In this document: in pieces, positions 2,311 to 9,447 of the stretch
How positions within the stretch are numbered: the stretch's first letter is position 1
Layout: the number at the start of each line of letters is the position of its first letter
DNA from: Prasinococcaceae sp. CCMP 1430
Taxonomy: Eukaryota; Plantae; Prasinodermophyta
Assembly (NCBI GenBank): GCA_013416795.1
Contig: RQSC01000018.1
Span: 131,274-195,273, forward strand
Direction: 5' to 3'
DNA: 64,000 bases
Notes under the pieces: generated by a model
Databases searched by the model: none
Told to the model about the DNA's origin: nothing
Seen by the model: the letters and a program-made list of their open reading frames with translations, nothing else
Position numbers and translations under genes: made by a program

Positions 2311-3167
2311 CGGCGCTTCTGAAGGTTTCGCATGTTGACGCCGCCGATCGACGCAGGGCCGCGGTGGGGAGCCGCCACACGGCGCGCGCCGCGCGCTGCT
2401 TCCCCTCCCCCCCACCCCACCCCCCTTCTTCAAACGCTGCCGTCCTGCCGGTGCGTAGCAGCAGGCGCGCGCTCGCGCGCCCGCGCCCGCGCTCGCTCGC
2501 GCTCGCGCTCGCGTGGGCGCGCGCGGACGGGCCGCTGCTCGCCGAGCGCGCCCGCGCTCTTTTTCGCCTTTTCCGCGCCCGTGTGGCGAAATATCTGCCC
2601 GCAGCGCACGCGCAGCGCACGCTGCGCGCGGGCAGCAGCAAGCATCCCCTCTGCCTCCCGGCACCCCAACCCCTCCTCCTCCCATTTCTCCCCTGCCCTC
2701 TCCGCCCCCTCCTCCCGCTCCCGCTCGACCCCTGCCGCGGCGCGGCGGCGGGAGGCGGGGAAGGCCGCCGCGGGCTGCGCGCGCGCAGCAGCGCCGCCCG
2801 CCGGTGATCGCTTTACGGCGCGGCGCGCTTTTTGGGTTCGGGACTGCAGGCGCGCTGGGCCACGGCGGCAGCGGCGCCCGGCGCAGTTCGGGCGCGGGTG
2901 GGGCTCTCTCGCCACTTCAACGCACACACACGCCCATCCACCTTGGCCCGTTGCTCGCGCTCGCGCTCGCGGGCACAAGTCGCGAGTGGCCCCGCAGCGC
3001 CTGCCGCTAGTTCAGACGACCTGCACCGCGCCGCCGCTGACGGGGCCGCGCCCCCCCCCCCCCCTTCAGGACGGCGACCGCCCCCTCACCTCATCCCACC
3101 CCTCCTATCCCGCCTGCCCCTTGCCCTGGCCCCGCGCGCACTAAACGCCGCCGCCAGGCGCGCAGCC

Positions 3168-4194
3168 ATGTCGGTCGAGGCCGGCGACAACGTCAAGAAG
3201 GCCGCGCGCATCGCGTGGACGCTCACCGATGAGGCGCCCGCGCTCGCCACGCACGCGCTGCTGCCGATCGTGCGCCGCTTCCTGACGCCCGCGGGCATCT
3301 CGGTCGAGCCGGCGGACATCTCGGTGGCGAGCCGCATCCTGGCGCAGTTCCCCGAGGCACTCACGCCCGCGCAGCGCACCGGCGACACGCTGGCCGCGCT
3401 CGGCACCATCGCCAAGACGCCGCGCGCGAACATCATCAAGACGCCCAACGTGTCGGCGTCTGTGCCGCAGCTCATGGAGGCCATCGCCGAGCTCAACGCC
3501 AAGGGCTTCGCCGTGCCGCCGTACGTGCAGGAGCCGACCACCGAGGAGGAGAGGGCGAACAATGCCAAGTACGCCAAGGTGCTCGGCTCGGCCGTGAACC
3601 CGGTGCTCCGCGAGGGCAACTCCGACCGCCGCGTCGCCGCGCCCGTGAAGGCGTACGCCCAGAAGAACCCGCACCGCCTCGGCAAGTGGGAGGCGACCTC
3701 CAAGTCGCACGTGGCGTCGATGAAGGACGGCGACTTCTTCTCGGCCGAGAAGAGCCACGTGTGCGCCGAGCCCACCGACGTGCGGATCGAGTTCGTCGCG
3801 GAGGGCGCCGACGAGGCCGTCACCCTCAAGGAGAAGGTCGCGCTGCAGGCGGGCGAGGTGATCGACGCCTCGCGCATGTCGGCCGCCGCGCTGCGCCAGT
3901 ACATCGAGGATGAGCTCACCAGCGCCAAGGCGGACGACCTGATGGTGTCGGTGCACCTGAAGGCCACCATGATGAAGATCTCGGATCCCATCATTTTCGG
4001 CCACGTCGTGTCGGTCTTCTTTAGGGAGGTGTTCGCCAAGCACGGCGACACCTTCGCCAGGCTGGGCGTCAATCCCAACAACGGGCTCGGCGCGCTCTTT
4101 GCCAAGCTCAAGGCGCTGCCCGACGCCGAGCGCGAGGCCATCGAGGCGGACGTCGCCGCGTGCTACGAGACGCGCCCGCGCCTCGCGATGGTCG

Positions 4195-4225
<31 letters not shown>

Positions 4226-4427
4226 CCCCTCGGACGTCATCATCGACGCGTCCATGCCGTGCGTGGTGCGCGACTCGGGCAAGATGTGGAACAAGGACGG
4301 CAAGCTCGAGGACGTCAAGTGCCTCATCCCCGACCGATCCTACGCGCCCATCTATGAGGCGTGCCTGCAGGACTGCAAGGCCAACGGCCAGTTCGACGTG
4401 TCCACCATGGGCAACGTGTGCAACGTG

Positions 4428-4478
<51 letters not shown>

Positions 4479-7400
4479 AACATCAAGCAGGCTGGCGCCG
4501 TCCGCGTGGTCGATGCCAAGAGCGGCGCGATCGTGTTCGAGCACGCCGTGGGCGAGGGCGACATCTGGCGCATGTGCCAGACCAAGGACGAGCCCATCCG
4601 CGACTGGGTGCGCCTGGCTGTCTCGCGCTCGCGCGCGACCGGCTCGCCGGCCATTTTCTGGCTCGACGAGCAGCGCGCGCACGACGCCGTGCTCATCGCC
4701 AAGGTCAACGAGTACATCAAGGCTCACGACACGGCAGGCCTGGACATCTCGATCAAGAAGCCGGAGGAGGCCATCAAGGTCTCCATGGCGCGCGCGCGCA
4801 GCGGCAAGGACACCATCTCCGTGACCGGCAACGTGCTGCGCGACTATCTGACCGACCTGTTCCCCATCATCGAGCTGGGCACCTCGGCGAAGATGCTCTC
4901 CATCGTGCCACTGCTCAAGGGCGGCGGCCTCTTCGAGACCGGCGCGGGCGGCTCGGCGCCAAAGCACGTGCAGCAGTTCGTGGAGGAGAACCACCTGCGC
5001 TGGGACTCGCTGGGCGAGTACCTCGCGCTGGCCGTGTCGCTCGAGGACCTTGCGGCCAAGGCGGCGAACGCGCAGGCCAAGGCGCTGGCCAAGGCGCTCA
5101 ACACCGCCATCGGCAAGCTCCTCGACCAGAACAAGTCGCCCGGCCGCAAGGTCATGCAGCTGGACAATCGCGGGTCCCACTTCTACATCGCCATGTGGTG
5201 GGCGGAGTCCATGGCCGAGGTCGACCCCTCCTTCGCGGAGCTCGCCGCGGCACTGAAGGCTGGCGAGGCCTCCATCACGCAGGAGATGATCGAGTGCCAG
5301 GGCAAGCCCGTGGACATCGGGGGCTACTGGCTGCCGGACGCCGCCAAGTGCGCCAAGGCCATGCGCCCCAGCGCGACCTTCAACGCGCTCATCGACATCC
5401 CGGTCAAAATGAGCCACCTCGACCCCGAGGGCTCGCGCACCGTCTCCGACGTCTACGCCAAGCTCGAGACAAACCTGGCCGAGGTGCGCAAGAACATCAG
5501 CGAGCCGCTGACGCTCGCTGAGAAGATCGTGTACGGCCACCTCGACGACCCCACCACGATCCCTAAGCGCGGCGAGACATATCTCAAGCTGCGCCCCGAC
5601 CGCGTGGCCATGCAGGACGCCACGGCGCAGATGGCGCTGCTGCAATTCATCTCGTCGGGCCTGCCCAAGGCGGCCGTGCCCTCGACCATCCACTGCGACC
5701 ACCTGATCGCCGCCGAGTCAGGCGACATGGAGGACCTGGGCAACGCCAAGAAGGTCAACAAGGAGGTGTACGACTTCCTGGCCTCCTGCGGCTCCAAGTT
5801 CGGCATCGGATACTGGAAGCCCGGCGCGGGCATCATCCACCAGACCGTGCTCGAGAACTACGCCTTCCCGGGCGGCATGATGATCGGCACCGACTCGCAC
5901 ACGCCCAACGCCGGCGGCCTGGGCATGTGCGCCGTGGGTGTGGGCGGCGCTGACGCCGTCGACGTGATGGCCGACATGCCGTGGGAGCTCAAGGCGCCCA
6001 AGGTCATCGGCGTGCACCTCAAGGGCAAGATGGGCAACTGGACGTCGCCGAAGGACGTCATCCTCAAGGTCGCCGACATCCTCACCGTGTCGGGTGGCAC
6101 GGGCGCCATCGTCGAGTACTACGGCGAGGGCGTGGACTCCATCTCGGCGACGGGCATGGCAACGATTTGTAACATGGGCGCCGAGATTGGCGCCACCACA
6201 TCGGTCTTCCCGCTGTCCGAGCGCCAGCTCGAGTACTTGCGCGAGACCGGCCGTGCGGACGTCGCGCACCTGGCCACGCTCAACCGCCACAACCTGGTGC
6301 CCGACGAGGGCTGCACGTACGACCGCGTGATCGAGATCGACCTCGACACGCTCGCGCCGCACATCAACGGCCCCTTCACGCCCGACCTGTGCACGGCCGT
6401 GGCCGACATGAAGGCGCGCGTCGAGGCCGAGGGTTGGCCCAACGCCATCTCGTCCGGCCTGATCGGCTCGTGCACGAACTCCAGTTATGAGGACATGGCC
6501 AAGTGCGCCAACCTCACCAAGCAGGCGCTCGATGCGGGTCTCAAGTTCAAGATCCCGTTTTTTGTGACCCCGGGCTCGCGCGCCGTCCAGGTGAACATGC
6601 TCAAGGACGGCTTTGTCAAGCATTTTGAGGACGCCGGTGCCATCGTGCTGGCAAAGGCGTGCGGCCCGTGCATCGGGCAGTGGAAGCGCAAGGTGCCACC
6701 AGGCGTGAAAAACTCGATCGTGACGTCGTACAACCGGAACTTCGCCAAGCGCAACGACGGCAACCCAGACACGCACGCGTTCGTGACAAGCCCTGAGCTG
6801 GTCACCATGCTGTCCTTCGCGGGCGAGCTGAGCTTCAACCCGTACGCCGACTCGCTGGAGACGCCCGATGGCAAGGAGTTCCGCTTCAAGATCCCCGAGG
6901 GCTGCCCGTCCATCCCGCCGAGCGGATGGGACATCGACGAGTCCATCTTCCAGCCGCCCGCCGCCGACGGCTCGGACGTCAGCGTGGCCGTCGACCCCAA
7001 GTCGGAGCGCCTGCAGCTGCTGACGCCCTTCCAGAAGTGGGATGGCCAAGACTACAAGGACTGCCCGGTCCTCATCAAGGCACTCGGCAAGTGCACGACC
7101 GACCACATCTCGATGGCCGGCCCGTGGCTCAAGTTCCGCGGGCACCTCGATAACATCAGCAACAACTGCCTCATCGGTGCCGTCAACGCGGAGAGCGGCA
7201 AGACCAACGCCGTGACCAACCAGGTGACGGGCGAGGTTGGCAAGGTGCCCGACGTTGCGCGCGCCTACCGCGAGCAGGGCATCAAGTGGGTGGTCATCGG
7301 CGACCGGAACTACGGCGAGGGCTCGAGCCGCGAGCACGCCGCGCTCGAGCCACGCAACCTCGGCGGGGTGGCGGTGATCACGCGCTCGTTCGCGCGCATC

Positions 7401-7673
7401 CACGAGACCAACCTGAAGAAGCAGGGCATGCTGCCGCTGACCTTCGTTGAGCCGGCGGACTACGACAGGATCACGGGCAACGACAAGCTCTCGGTGCTCG
7501 GCCTCGCCGACCTGGCGCCTGGCGCCAACCTCACGCTCAAGGTGACGCCCGCGAGCGGCGCGGAGGCCTTCGATGTGCCGGTCGCGCACACCTTCAACTC
7601 GGAGCAGATCGAGTGGTTCCGGGCCGGGTCGGCGTTGAATTTGATGAAGGAGAAGAACGCGCTCTCTAGCTAG
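3168..7673 (+). CDS. Monomeric (NADP-type) isocitrate dehydrogenase fused to mitochondrial-type aconitase, ~1500 aa, no intron
   Basis: One ORF. 3168-~5400 (~745 aa) is monomeric IDH: [138 protein letters not shown]. ~5409-7670 (~754 aa) is aconitase: [105 protein letters not shown]. Confidence 0.95.
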
Positions 7674-7892
7674 AGGAGGGGGGAGGGGGCAAGGTTGACC
7701 TCCAACGCACTCGCACGCGCGCGACATATAAACAACAAACGCCCAGATATTATCTATTCCATGCCACGCCAGGAGAAGCTGAGCGAGCCAAGCGAACTGA
7801 GATAGGGGCGGGGGAGGGTGCTAGCAAGGCTACGTCAACTCCCTCCGGATTATTATAAGTGCAAGCGGCCGCAAGGGACTACTCCTTGGCTC

Positions 7893-9447
7893 TCAGTCGC
7901 CCTTGCCGGCGGGCGCCCCGCTCTCGAGGTCCGCGTCGTCCAGGTCGCCGCTCGCAGTGCCGCGTGCCCGCATGCTCAGAAACTGATCGATATCGCCCGC
8001 CATGAGCTTCGCAACGGGCTTGGTCAGCTCTGAGCCCTCCAGCAAGATCTTGAGCGCCGCCGTCATCGGCGCCGCCAGCAGCAGCCCCGGCACGCCCCAG
8101 AGCATGCCCCAGAAGATGAGCGCCGCCAGAACCGTGATGGGATGCAACTGCAGGTGGTCACCGAGGACCTTGGGCTCAACGAAGTTGCCTAGGAAGATAT
8201 GGATCGCCGCCGGGAGCACCAGCACCATGAGGACGCGCGTAAGACTCGTCGACTCATTCACGAGCACCAGCGGCACCGGCATGAGCACGGCAATGATGGT
8301 GCCCGCCTCGGGGATGAACTTCAGGATGAAAGTGAAGAGGCCGAACACGAGGGCCATGTCCACGTTCATGGCCCACAGCACAAACGTGCACGCGCCAGCG
8401 CACACAACGCTCAGCACGGTCTGGTTGGAAAGGCGCCAGTGCGCGCACACGTCAGCTCTCTGCCGCGTGATGTCGCCGCGCGGGCGCCGCCTGGGGGCGC
8501 GCGCGGCGCATCCTTGGGCCGAGCACGCACCTTCGTGAGCAAGTATTGCTTGATGCGTTTCTCGATCTGCTCCGCGTAGGTGCCCTTGATGATGGATGTC
8601 TTCCTCGGGCGCTCCAGGAGGTAGATGACAAACAGGAAGACCAGGAAGGTATTGGTGAGGCCCATGGCGAGGTCCTCGAGGTACTTCTTCACCGTCGCGG
8701 CGATGAGAGGGCCAATAGGCAGTTTCGCGGTTTGCGCCTGCGCGCCGCTCGACAGGGGCAGTGTAGGCGCGAGCGCGGAGTGTGGCACAAGTCAGCGCGC
8801 GTGACATTTTCGCGGCGGGTCGGCCAGGCATCGCATTCGCCGGGCCGGAGGGCCCGCGGCGCGCACCTTGATGATGTCCAGCAGCGAAGGCAGCTGATCG
8901 CGCTCCCATCCCTCCTGCCCTGGCAACTTGATCGTGAGCGAGTCAGCGGCAGCCGCGATCGCGTTGACGCGCTTCACATACGCGTCCGTGTTGGAAGACA
9001 AGTCTCGCACACTCTGGTAAAGAATGTTGGCGACCACGGTGAGCACGAGAAGCGCAATCAACAAGCTCACCACCACCGCGGCCAGGTGCGGCATGTACAT
9101 GCGTGTGCGGCAGAACCCGATGACCGGGCTGAGCGCGTAGCTGAGCAGTATCGCGAGCACGAGCGGTACCATGACCGGCTGCAGCCAGTGCAGCGCCGCC
9201 GCGAGCAGCACCGTCGTCACCACGGCCATGCACGCGCTCTGGATCCACATGTTGGCGTTCAGCGCGTTCAGCGTGTTCATGAGCGCCTCCGACGGCGCCG
9301 CCACATCGATGTTTGCTTGCATGCCACCGCGGCGCGGCGTGCGCGGCTCCTCGCTGCGCGAGGGCGCCCCACCCTGTGCCAGGGGCGACGCGCCGATGAA
9401 CGCCGCCGCGCTCGCCGGCGACAGCGCCTCGCCAGCGCCGTCGCCGC
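7893..9447 (-). CDS. AI-2E family (PerM/TqsA-like) transporter, 3 exons visible; the start is either in the N-gap or at ATG 9322
   Basis: Exons 9447/9322-8867, 8737-8531 and 8420-7893 are joined by phase-0 GT-AG introns. Hydrophobic protein with VMVPLVLAILLSYALSP, LFTFILKFIPEAGTII, IHIFLGNFVEPKVLGDHLQLHPITVLAALIFWGMLWGVPGLLLAAPMTA, typical of the AI-2E family. Confidence 0.9.

Follow-up and report, generated by a model that had tools for sequence, protein, structure and literature searches.

The early-diverging green marine picoalga Prasinoderma coloniale carries a gene that joins a monomeric isocitrate dehydrogenase (IDH) to a mitochondrial-type aconitase in one open reading frame, and a single transcript carries both halves. 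In the reading that we consider probable, this one nuclear gene is transcribed into one mRNA with one 5' intron and translated into a chain of ~163 kDa, which would act as a cytosolic module for the conversion of citrate to 2-oxoglutarate. The IDH-aconitase fusion is conserved and apparently undescribed; a description of such a fusion was found neither in the full-text literature nor in the P. coloniale genome paper, in agreement with the original prediction made from the DNA alone, which knew of no characterised example.

Within the window, the whole stretch of 64,000 nucleotides that was analysed, the gene is composed of the following elements:

2389..2450, forward strand: 3' part of the 5' exon; the RNA contigs extend no further 5' than ~2389

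2451..3157, forward strand: intron in the 5' leader, GT..AG, 707 nt; 2450 is joined to 3158 in both RNA-type runs

3168..7673, forward strand: coding sequence of the IDH-aconitase fusion, 1,501 amino acids plus stop codon, from ORF, translation and Pfam

The reading frame runs without a break over 2832..7673 with the first ATG at 3168 and the stop codon at 7671-7673, giving the one unbroken ORF of 1,501 codons that had been predicted at 3168-7673; equally, the protein strings cited with that prediction (48 letters) were located in their places. The fusion protein falls into the same 90% cluster as the EukProt Prasinoderma coloniale entry PRCOL_00005032-RA. Codon usage is as uniform across the junction as had been claimed, with a GC3 of 0.97 in the IDH and 0.93 in the aconitase half and an RSCU correlation of r = 0.97. 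The description of the gene as intronless was, however, wrong. The coding sequence is unspliced from ATG 3168 onward, but X15 and X16, two RNA-type contigs, have ends of 62 and 25 nt, respectively, that remain unaligned before 3157 and match window positions 2425-2449 exactly, and the contigs of both RNA-type runs thus place an intron with the donor GTGCGT at 2451 and a GC content of ~76% in the 5' leader, where it ends 10 nt upstream of the ATG.

The check for sequences spanning the junction that was proposed with the original prediction gave a clear outcome. The joint at 5397-5411 is crossed, with 0 mismatches, by a DNA contig (X1, 3109-5900 of the window) and by two RNA-type contigs, X15 (3157-5900) and X16 (4152-5741); DNA depth is even at ~410, and 98% of the sequence words are present in each of 14 DNA-type or unlabelled runs (1 from 2020, 13 from 2024). 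No splice joint occurs at 5397-5411 in the RNA-type contigs of the two runs. The RNA depth of X15 climbs 2-4 fold towards the 3' end; as this climb is not located at the joint and X16 is flat, it is read as 3' bias, although an extra 3' transcript might conceivably be its source.

The protein encoded by this transcript is organized as follows:

3210..5396, forward strand: monomeric (type III) NADP-isocitrate dehydrogenase domain, residues 15-743, PF03971

5397..5408, forward strand: four-residue joint (I-P-V-K) that separates the end of IDH homology from the start of aconitase homology

5409..7652, forward strand: mitochondrial-type aconitase, residues 748-1495, PF00330 and PF00694, beginning at the position of the mature N-terminus without a presequence of its own

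6471..6671, forward strand: [4Fe-4S] ligands C1102 (6471-6473), C1165 (6660-6662) and C1168 (6669-6671) in the GSCTNS and CGPC motifs

Homology to IDH ends at residue 742-743 and homology to aconitase begins at M748, the counterpart of residue 6 in the mature pig/bovine chain. The joint pattern [IAER][PA][VIT][KM]-MS-x-[LM]D is kept in all complete fusion sequences aligned, while the partial sequence P0004 has QSPMS; M748 does not vary among the fusions, many of which read Met-Met here. The predicted near-absence of a linker thus translates into four residues that are conserved across the fusions.

The IDH half is full-length, as had been anticipated: PF03971 covers residues 15-743 with model positions 2-734 of 734 (1200 bits), and the half aligns to residues 4-737 of the Azotobacter vinelandii enzyme (AvIDH, 1ITW; E = 3e-293). 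In this alignment S132, N135, R139, R145, K255, D350, Y420, R547, D548 and D552 of AvIDH, the isocitrate and metal ligands in its structures, are all identical in the fusion, and the NADP residues H589, R600 and R649 correspond to identical H600, R611 and R660; these substrate and NADP positions are invariant across 12 fusion sequences. A role in NADP specificity has been assigned to His589 and Arg600 (PMC4360740). The likeness to the bacterial monomeric NADP-IDHs of A. vinelandii (1ITW, 1J1W) and Corynebacterium glutamicum (2B0T) therefore extends over the full-length alignment and includes substrate, metal and NADP 2'-phosphate residues, but the algal enzyme belongs to a eukaryotic clade and is joined C-terminally to aconitase instead of standing alone. 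Type III IDH has been treated as bacterial in the IDH literature (PMC7460673); monomeric IDH is, however, not only bacterial. In the tree, the IDH half nests among eukaryotic monomeric IDHs that stand alone and bear presequences (from a haptophyte, a brown alga and others), a clade that adjoins Planctomycetota and Gammaproteobacteria. From this nesting, any bacterial origin of the IDH half would predate the fusion and be common to other algae, and the original proposal of a module built from a laterally acquired IDH was too specific, as a private bacterial acquisition is not what the tree displays.

The aconitase half comprises PF00330 (Aconitase) at residues 785-1219 and PF00694 (Aconitase_C) at 1301-1428. 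It is collinear with residues 6-749 of the mitochondrial aconitase 1C96 with 1080 bits, compared to 188 bits against IRP1, and its domains 1-3, linker and C-terminal domain 4 represent the ACO2 layout and not that of AcnB or IRP. The three predicted [4Fe-4S] cysteines are all present, with C1102, C1165 and C1168 aligning to pig C358, C421 and C424 and being invariant across fusions. Equally, D100, H101, H147, D165, S166, H167, N258, E262, N446, R447, R452, D568, R580, S642, S643 and R644, the catalytic and substrate residues of pig aconitase, are kept in the alignment with 1C96 and invariant in fusions. Four-domain order, cysteine ligands and catalytic residues are thus shared with ACO2 of pig and cow (7ACN, 1C96), but the fusion has no transit peptide ahead of the mature N-terminus, a position that is filled by IDH. 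With respect to descent, the fusion half groups (support of 100) with stand-alone presequence-less aconitases that start MSKLDP, and this clade is sister to the stramenopile enzymes (99), apart from the green-algal mitochondrial aconitases; an AU test of the fusion clade together with green algae, a group named only after the tree was seen, gave p = 0.018. The designation as mitochondrial-type aconitase consequently holds for family and layout, but the half does not derive from the mitochondrial enzyme of the green lineage, and an aconitase of mitochondrial type does not have to reside in mitochondria.

Homologues in other algae had been suspected from the outset, and a search for the architecture retrieved at least 11 protein clusters (90% identity) from aquatic metagenomes, P0001-P0010 and the P0623 cluster, which have all three Pfam domains and the joint in common at 70-81% identity and whose carriers are read as other picoeukaryotes. 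Fusion-bearing contigs of these carriers reach up to 1.18 Mb. A 601-aa probe spanning the joint recovered from 1.84 billion representatives, besides unrelated architectures, only two fragments of the same clade, and thus no more divergent fusions. The contigs of the P0002-P0010 carriers are very compact and intron-poor with 62-66% GC, and none of the fully read P0002-P0010 clusters has a member from NCBI, UniRef or EukProt. Mamiellophyceae are suggested as carriers by these contigs, but the lack of such members speaks against them, as does the single IDH gene, of type II, that is stated for Ostreococcus and Micromonas (PMC7460673, PMC4360740); such statements may, on the other hand, stem from annotation searches that missed proteins labelled 'aconitate hydratase'.

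The spliced mRNA contig L008 of the nearest relative codes for IDH alone and ends with a stop codon where the genomic sequence L006 diverges; L006 parts from L007 directly behind the LIDR codon, and genes on the opposite strand occupy the following 4.3 kb. For this relative, an intron at the joint or alternative splicing, for which a possible GTGTGAG donor lies one base past LIDR, was rejected in view of these opposite-strand genes and the stop codon of L008. A separate IDH-only copy or a strain variant is favoured as explanation for L006/L008. As a close relative possesses an IDH-only derivative, the fusion is able to come apart.

Concerning the compartment, the original framing as a TCA metabolon assumes mitochondria, while the conserved N-terminus without presequence points to the cytosol. 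Complete fusion sequences begin with M(E/S)(L/V), ~15-25 residues ahead of the IDH domain (16 to the first IDH motif), and a targeting peptide is not found at this conserved start, nor a PTS1-like C-terminus in the aligned fusion sequences. The genomic frames upstream of the start in L002 and L004 reach stops without an ATG, a comparison of start sites that is bounded by the blindness of metagenomic gene calls in other carriers to spliced upstream exons; the mRNA L008 of the relative, which is spliced, starts with MVVDVDSSVTKAAKIRW after 95 nt without an ATG and has an N-terminus as long as that of P. coloniale. Because the conserved start has no targeting peptide, the module is most likely cytosolic. 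The principal alternative, which has perhaps a modest chance of being correct, is a mitochondrial TCA-cycle enzyme that likewise produces 2-oxoglutarate and NADPH from citrate and is translated from an upstream start codon on a transcript that begins ahead of 2332:

2332..2334, forward strand: upstream ATG, in frame once spliced, possibly transcribed; it would add 43 amino acids rich in R, A and P

In the spliced frame a stop is located three codons 5' of this ATG, and the frame then stays open up to ATG 3168. The putative extension, MLTPPIDAGPRW...SCRRAA, is basic (6 R, 8 A, 10 P, a single acidic residue) and might serve as a matrix presequence; an AT-rich promoter-like island at ~2080-2260 lies directly upstream of ATG 2332. 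The mitochondrial type of the aconitase half and the presequence-like N-termini of stand-alone eukaryotic monomeric IDHs are compatible with import, and a mitochondrial role would be needed for the TCA cycle if P. coloniale has no other aconitase or IDH. Against it, the RNA contigs end at ~2389 and provide no coverage at ATG 2332, peptides with many R, A and P residues arise from GC-rich non-coding DNA in any case, complete fusions and the spliced mRNA of the relative keep the Met at 3168 as their start, and the nearest stand-alone aconitases have no presequences.

In the preferred cytosolic reading, deduced from sequence, the C-terminal aconitase half would convert citrate via cis-aconitate to isocitrate, and the N-terminal IDH half would immediately oxidize and decarboxylate isocitrate to 2-oxoglutarate, NADPH and CO2, provided that one chain is translated and both activities are retained, as the intact residues suggest. 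At the aconitase equilibrium isocitrate makes up no more than a few per cent, so that flux depends on the pull of the next enzyme. A kinetic benefit of the fusion might accordingly arise as the irreversible IDH step draws this unfavourable equilibrium with a stoichiometry fixed at 1:1 and over a very short distance. Cytosolic aconitase together with NADP-ICDH forms a 'citrate valve' yielding 2-oxoglutarate and NADPH. The fusion might be such a valve, delivering 2-oxoglutarate for nitrogen assimilation as well as cytosolic NADPH, and suggests how a green picoalga may obtain both in oligotrophic water. Two-step chemistry and the proposed compartment would thereby resemble the plant and animal cytosolic systems; there, however, two proteins are involved, an IRP/AcnA-type (IRP1-type) aconitase and a dimeric type II IDH, as opposed to one chain with mitochondrial-type aconitase and monomeric IDH.

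Proposed TCA metabolons are non-covalent complexes, and engineered fusions such as citrate synthase-malate dehydrogenase are man-made; the idea of proximity is alike, but the algal fusion is natural, covalent and almost linker-free. Whether TCA intermediates are channelled is a controversy of decades' standing, in which weak non-covalent complexes have supplied most of the evidence. A more far-reaching reading, which we regard as doubtful, would see in the chain the first natural covalent aconitase-IDH 'mini-metabolon', a single-chain cytosolic machine for citrate to 2-oxoglutarate and NADPH with a rigid, conserved near-zero linker, true channelling of isocitrate and recent natural fission products (IDH-only and aconitase-only). 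Channelling by the fusion is purely conjectural; should it occur, the gene would constitute a natural evolutionary experiment on the worth of covalently coupling an equilibrium-limited enzyme to a pulling partner. In either case the fusion is a clean test object for channelling, as it can be expressed and cut at the joint and has natural split versions in close relatives. Natural fusions of consecutive enzymes include the stramenopile TPI-GAPDH. Equally, a bifunctional isocitrate lyase-malate synthase is found in nematodes (PMC1630690) and a KYU-HAAO fusion in P. coloniale itself (PMC7455551). With these the algal protein shares the location of successive steps in one lineage-conserved polypeptide; the enzymes differ.

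The direction of flux would be oxidative in the proposed module. Operation mainly in reverse, by reductive carboxylation of 2-oxoglutarate to isocitrate and citrate for cytosolic acetyl-CoA and lipid synthesis, is conceivable: either reaction can in principle run backwards, the cofactor residues are of the NADP type, and the protein is probably cytosolic. IDH1 and ACO1 provide such a reductive route to citrate in hypoxic animal cells. We nevertheless judge it unlikely, since at physiological CO2 the balance lies strongly towards oxidative decarboxylation and the sequence gives no sign of direction. That two separate enzymes arise in vivo, because the chain is cut at the joint or because translation begins internally at the conserved Met747/748, is very improbable. 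The invariant M748 and the frequent Met-Met, the IDH-only mRNA of the close relative and the start of stand-alone aconitases at the same Met would fit such a separation, but ordinary mitochondrial aconitases keep this Met as well (pig MSHFEP at the mature N-terminus), so that ancestry explains its conservation; moreover, ribosomes are unlikely to initiate 2.2 kb inside an mRNA, and the conservation extends to the four residues of the joint. An assembly or annotation artefact merging two neighbouring genes, as in the merged Nup85 and aconitase model P0248 elsewhere, found no support here and is refuted by the independent DNA and RNA contigs across the joint, the at least 11 independent clusters with the same joint in many assemblies and the uniform codon usage.

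Two long ORFs antisense to the fusion gene, at 3141-5702 and 5718-7727, match no Pfam family and merely reflect the high GC content.

The gene that joins a monomeric isocitrate dehydrogenase (IDH) to a mitochondrial-type aconitase in Prasinoderma coloniale is real, expressed and conserved. The original prediction had read it as a single long fused reading frame; one frame is indeed open, and all protein strings quoted at the time are found in its translation:

2832-7673, + strand: open frame by ORF scan, first ATG at 3168, stop at 7671-7673, giving 1,501 residues
residues 15-743, + strand: monomeric isocitrate dehydrogenase, Pfam PF03971 (model positions 2-734 of 734, 1200 bits)
residues 785-1219, + strand: Aconitase, Pfam PF00330
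residues 1301-1428, + strand: Aconitase_C, Pfam PF00694
2451-3157, + strand: intron of 707 nt, from RNA contigs and GT/AG sites, ending 10 nt before the ATG

Two long opposite-strand ORFs (3141-5702 and 5718-7727) are without family match in Pfam and are chance products of a sequence with 67% GC and 95% GC3. Codon bias is uniform across the junction as proposed, with RSCU of the IDH and aconitase halves correlated at r = 0.97 and GC3 of 0.97 vs 0.93.

Continuity across the joint was assessed with contigs from four public runs aligned over window 2600-8200, and mapping bears out the fusion in DNA and RNA, as one DNA-type and two RNA-type contigs bridge 5397-5411 with 0 mismatches. A single contig of the DNA-type run (2020) spans 3109-5900 at a flat depth of ~410, equally with 0 mismatches over its length, and the RNA-type runs X15 and X16 of the same organism contribute contigs of 2,806 nt (3157-5900) and 1,592 nt (4152-5741), both crossing the joint without mismatch or gap. 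In the contigs of the four runs the joint coincides with neither a step in depth nor the end of a molecule, and with no credible splice junction; a 2757→5476 splice joint listed in X16 was discarded, being based on 21 letters from an unrelated contig. Depth in X15 climbs gradually 3'-ward (96 → 176 → 285 → about 300-400), which we read as 3' bias, and is flat in X16. In each of thirteen more runs (2024), probably, at a guess, the mutation-accumulation lines of PMC11884799, 98% of sampled words are present.

The 90%-identity cluster of the fusion protein includes the published gene model (EukProt EP00793 Prasinoderma coloniale PRCOL_00005032-RA; P0121, 1,475 aa), in which 26 residues of the IDH domain (36-61, window 3273-3350) are missing. 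The cluster membership assigns the window to P. coloniale. Since RNA-type contigs of X15 and X16 cover these residues gap-free, the intron predicted there is spurious. The gene is, on the other hand, not 'intronless' as had been thought, only the coding sequence from 3168 being unspliced: in both RNA-type runs the letters before 3157 mismatch the adjacent DNA and match window 2425-2449 exactly, which together with a donor GTGCGT at 2451 and an acceptor AG at 3156-3157 establishes the 5' intron. No other stretch of the region is as GC-rich as this intron (~76%); it holds short repeats of the CGCTCG type and, at 3052-3064, a run of C, and an ORF-like frame without ATG crosses it from 2832 into the coding sequence.

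At the joint, the expectation of almost no linker is confirmed: the last IDH-homologous residue is 742-743, the first aconitase-homologous residue M748, and only the four residues I-P-V-K stand in between. M748 corresponds to the MSHFEP motif, the mature N-terminus of animal aconitase, so that the IDH occupies the exact place of the aconitase transit peptide. The pattern ...LID-x-P-V-(K/M)-M-S-x-L-D-P... is kept across the complete fusion sequences aligned, and its conserved Met is explained by aconitase ancestry and not as a relic start codon.

Both enzyme halves look active as judged from their residues. The C-terminal half is of the predicted mitochondrial type, aligning over residues 6-749 with bovine and pig mitochondrial aconitase at 1080 bits vs 188 bits with IRP1, and alignment to solved structures finds the three expected [4Fe-4S] cysteines (C1102, C1165, C1168) intact along with all catalytic residues, taking the catalytic and substrate residues of the pig enzyme as reference. 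For the N-terminal half the structural match is 1ITW, the monomeric IDH of Azotobacter vinelandii, aligned from residue 4 to residue 737 (E = 3e-293), and the isocitrate and metal ligands of that enzyme, S132, N135, R139, R145, K255, D350, Y420, R547, D548 and D552, are all identical. Equally retained are the NADP-determining H589, R600 and R649 (1ITW numbering); according to PMC4360740, H589 and R600 are present without exception in monomeric NADP-IDHs, and the NAD-specific enzyme has other residues in their place. Across 12 aligned fusion sequences, the ligand, cofactor and catalytic positions of both halves do not vary.

The suspected unannotated homologs exist, as at least eleven clusters with 70-81% identity have the same architecture. 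A joint-spanning search identified ten (P0001-P0010; 70-77% identity) with all three domains and a fully covered joint, from ENA, JGI, Tara and Logan assemblies with contigs of up to 1.18 Mb, and the IDH search added an eleventh (P0623/P0625, 81% identical). A 601-residue joint-spanning probe detected no more distant fusion among 1.84 billion cluster representatives; all it yielded was two fragments whose spacing is the same. The fusion is thus conserved but limited to a single clade, with identities of 70% or more. Contigs of other carriers are very compact, intron-poor and of 62-66% GC. Two papers (PMC7460673 and PMC4360740) credit Ostreococcus and Micromonas with just one IDH gene, of type II. 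A gene for an Arm/ARM_PUB and TIR_2 protein adjoins the fusion upstream on contigs L001, L004 and L005 from two different carrier lineages, suggesting that local synteny is possibly conserved in these two.

Separate phylogenies, proposed for each half, place the IDH in a eukaryotic algal clade and the aconitase beside stramenopile enzymes. In the IDH tree, a quick tree like that of aconitase, so that the supports given for both merit some reserve, the fusion halves are monophyletic (99) within a clade, itself well supported, of stand-alone monomeric IDHs from eukaryotes (Chrysochromulina, Ectocarpus, MMETSP and EukProt entries, most with presequence-like N-termini), which adjoins Planctomycetota and Gammaproteobacteria. 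Any bacterial origin therefore predates the fusion and is common to other algae: of the supposed lateral acquisition, the bacterial neighbourhood stands, but not an acquisition specific to the fusion. The aconitase halves group (100) with presequence-less stand-alone aconitases (P0360-P0362 and Gymnodinium smaydae P0476), relatives that start directly at MSKLDP...; the mitochondrial aconitases of stramenopiles form their sister group (99), and the green-algal clade of Mesostigma and chlorophytes (99) stands apart. A tree constrained to unite the fusion clade with green algae, a group named post hoc, is worse by 48.7 log-likelihood units (AU p = 0.018). 'Mitochondrial-type' aconitases starting at the mature N-terminus (MSKLDP..., MVMMSELDP...) comprise P0360-P0362, P0476 (G. 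smaydae, EukProt) and P0479; all fall in one clade with the aconitase half of the fusion, which makes them candidate cytosolic enzymes of this type or fission products.

Separation of the halves may have occurred in a relative with 82% DNA identity to the window:

L006:1432-3987, L007:1-2440, L008:1-2415: contigs of the putative fission, endings LIDRLCE(S/A)... after the joint codon

L007 carries the entire fusion, collinear with the window. The genomic contig L006 is 98% identical to L007 over a stretch that starts 230 nt ahead of the IDH domain and reaches the joint LIDR codon. A stop follows, then two CD36 genes encoded on the opposite strand, and the flanks of L006 show no synteny with the window. 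The spliced mRNA L008, 99% identical to L007, ends LIDRLCES-stop with a tail matching L006. As both match L007 up to the joint, an IDH-only derivative is expressed in the same organism or a sister strain; it is nested within the fusion clade of the IDH tree and looks like a recent fission, partial duplication or strain polymorphism. The G. smaydae aconitase, whose start MVMMSELDP still contains the V-M-M-S seen at the fusion joint, likewise branches from within the fusion clade (96, quick tree), as a fission product would.

Complete fusions start with M-(E/S)-(L/V) and a short acidic stretch, ~15-25 residues before the IDH domain. The upstream frame reaches a stop without ATG in carrier contigs L002 and L004 and has no ATG in L001 and L009, and L008, from the nearest relative, has a 95-nt leader without ATG, then MVVDVDSSVTKAAKIRW, its distance from start to first IDH motif equalling that of the P. 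coloniale N-terminus. No PTS1-like C-terminus occurs among the aligned fusion sequences. Short starts without targeting peptide, the lack of PTS1 and the presequence-less aconitase relatives indicate the cytosol, where the fusion may well reside. A mitochondrial location, which we consider rather unlikely, could draw on ATG 2332, which comes into frame once the P. coloniale intron is removed and has a stop three codons ahead of it. Translation from there would append a basic, R/A/P-rich extension of 43 residues; however, GC-rich leaders yield such peptides on translation anyway. The RNA contigs begin at ~2389, short of this ATG.

A cytosolic fusion would do for the alga what cytosolic aconitase and ICDH do in plants, providing NADPH and the 2-oxoglutarate needed to assimilate nitrogen. 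The aconitase half would isomerise citrate to isocitrate, which the tethered NADP-IDH would oxidise and decarboxylate to 2-oxoglutarate, this irreversible step pulling the unfavourable aconitase step, and the covalent link would set stoichiometry, co-expression and proximity. Isocitrate channelling, flux direction and single-chain status we infer. The fusion is of the same kind as natural fusions of consecutive enzymes with a different enzyme pair, and it renders aconitase-IDH coupling directly testable. No description of a natural aconitase-IDH fusion was found in the full-text literature, with subscription journals mostly outside the scope; the P. coloniale genome paper and seven text supplements mention neither aconitase nor isocitrate dehydrogenase, the sole fusion reported in the paper being KYU-HAAO (PMC7455551). 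The gene model is in public annotation and JGI pipelines name relatives 'aconitate hydratase', the sequences thus being public but seemingly unremarked.

Other unusual architectures in the representative library join aconitase with malate dehydrogenase (P0224, 1,099 aa), Iso_dh with monomeric IDH (P0211, 1,163 aa) and Nup85 with aconitase (P0248, 1,765 aa), the last probably a merged gene model. Downstream of the fusion gene lies one further feature:

7893-8909, - strand: AI-2E transporter family neighbour, PF01594 (E = 6e-29)

RNA depth returns at ~7829, which a convergent transcript of the neighbour would explain.
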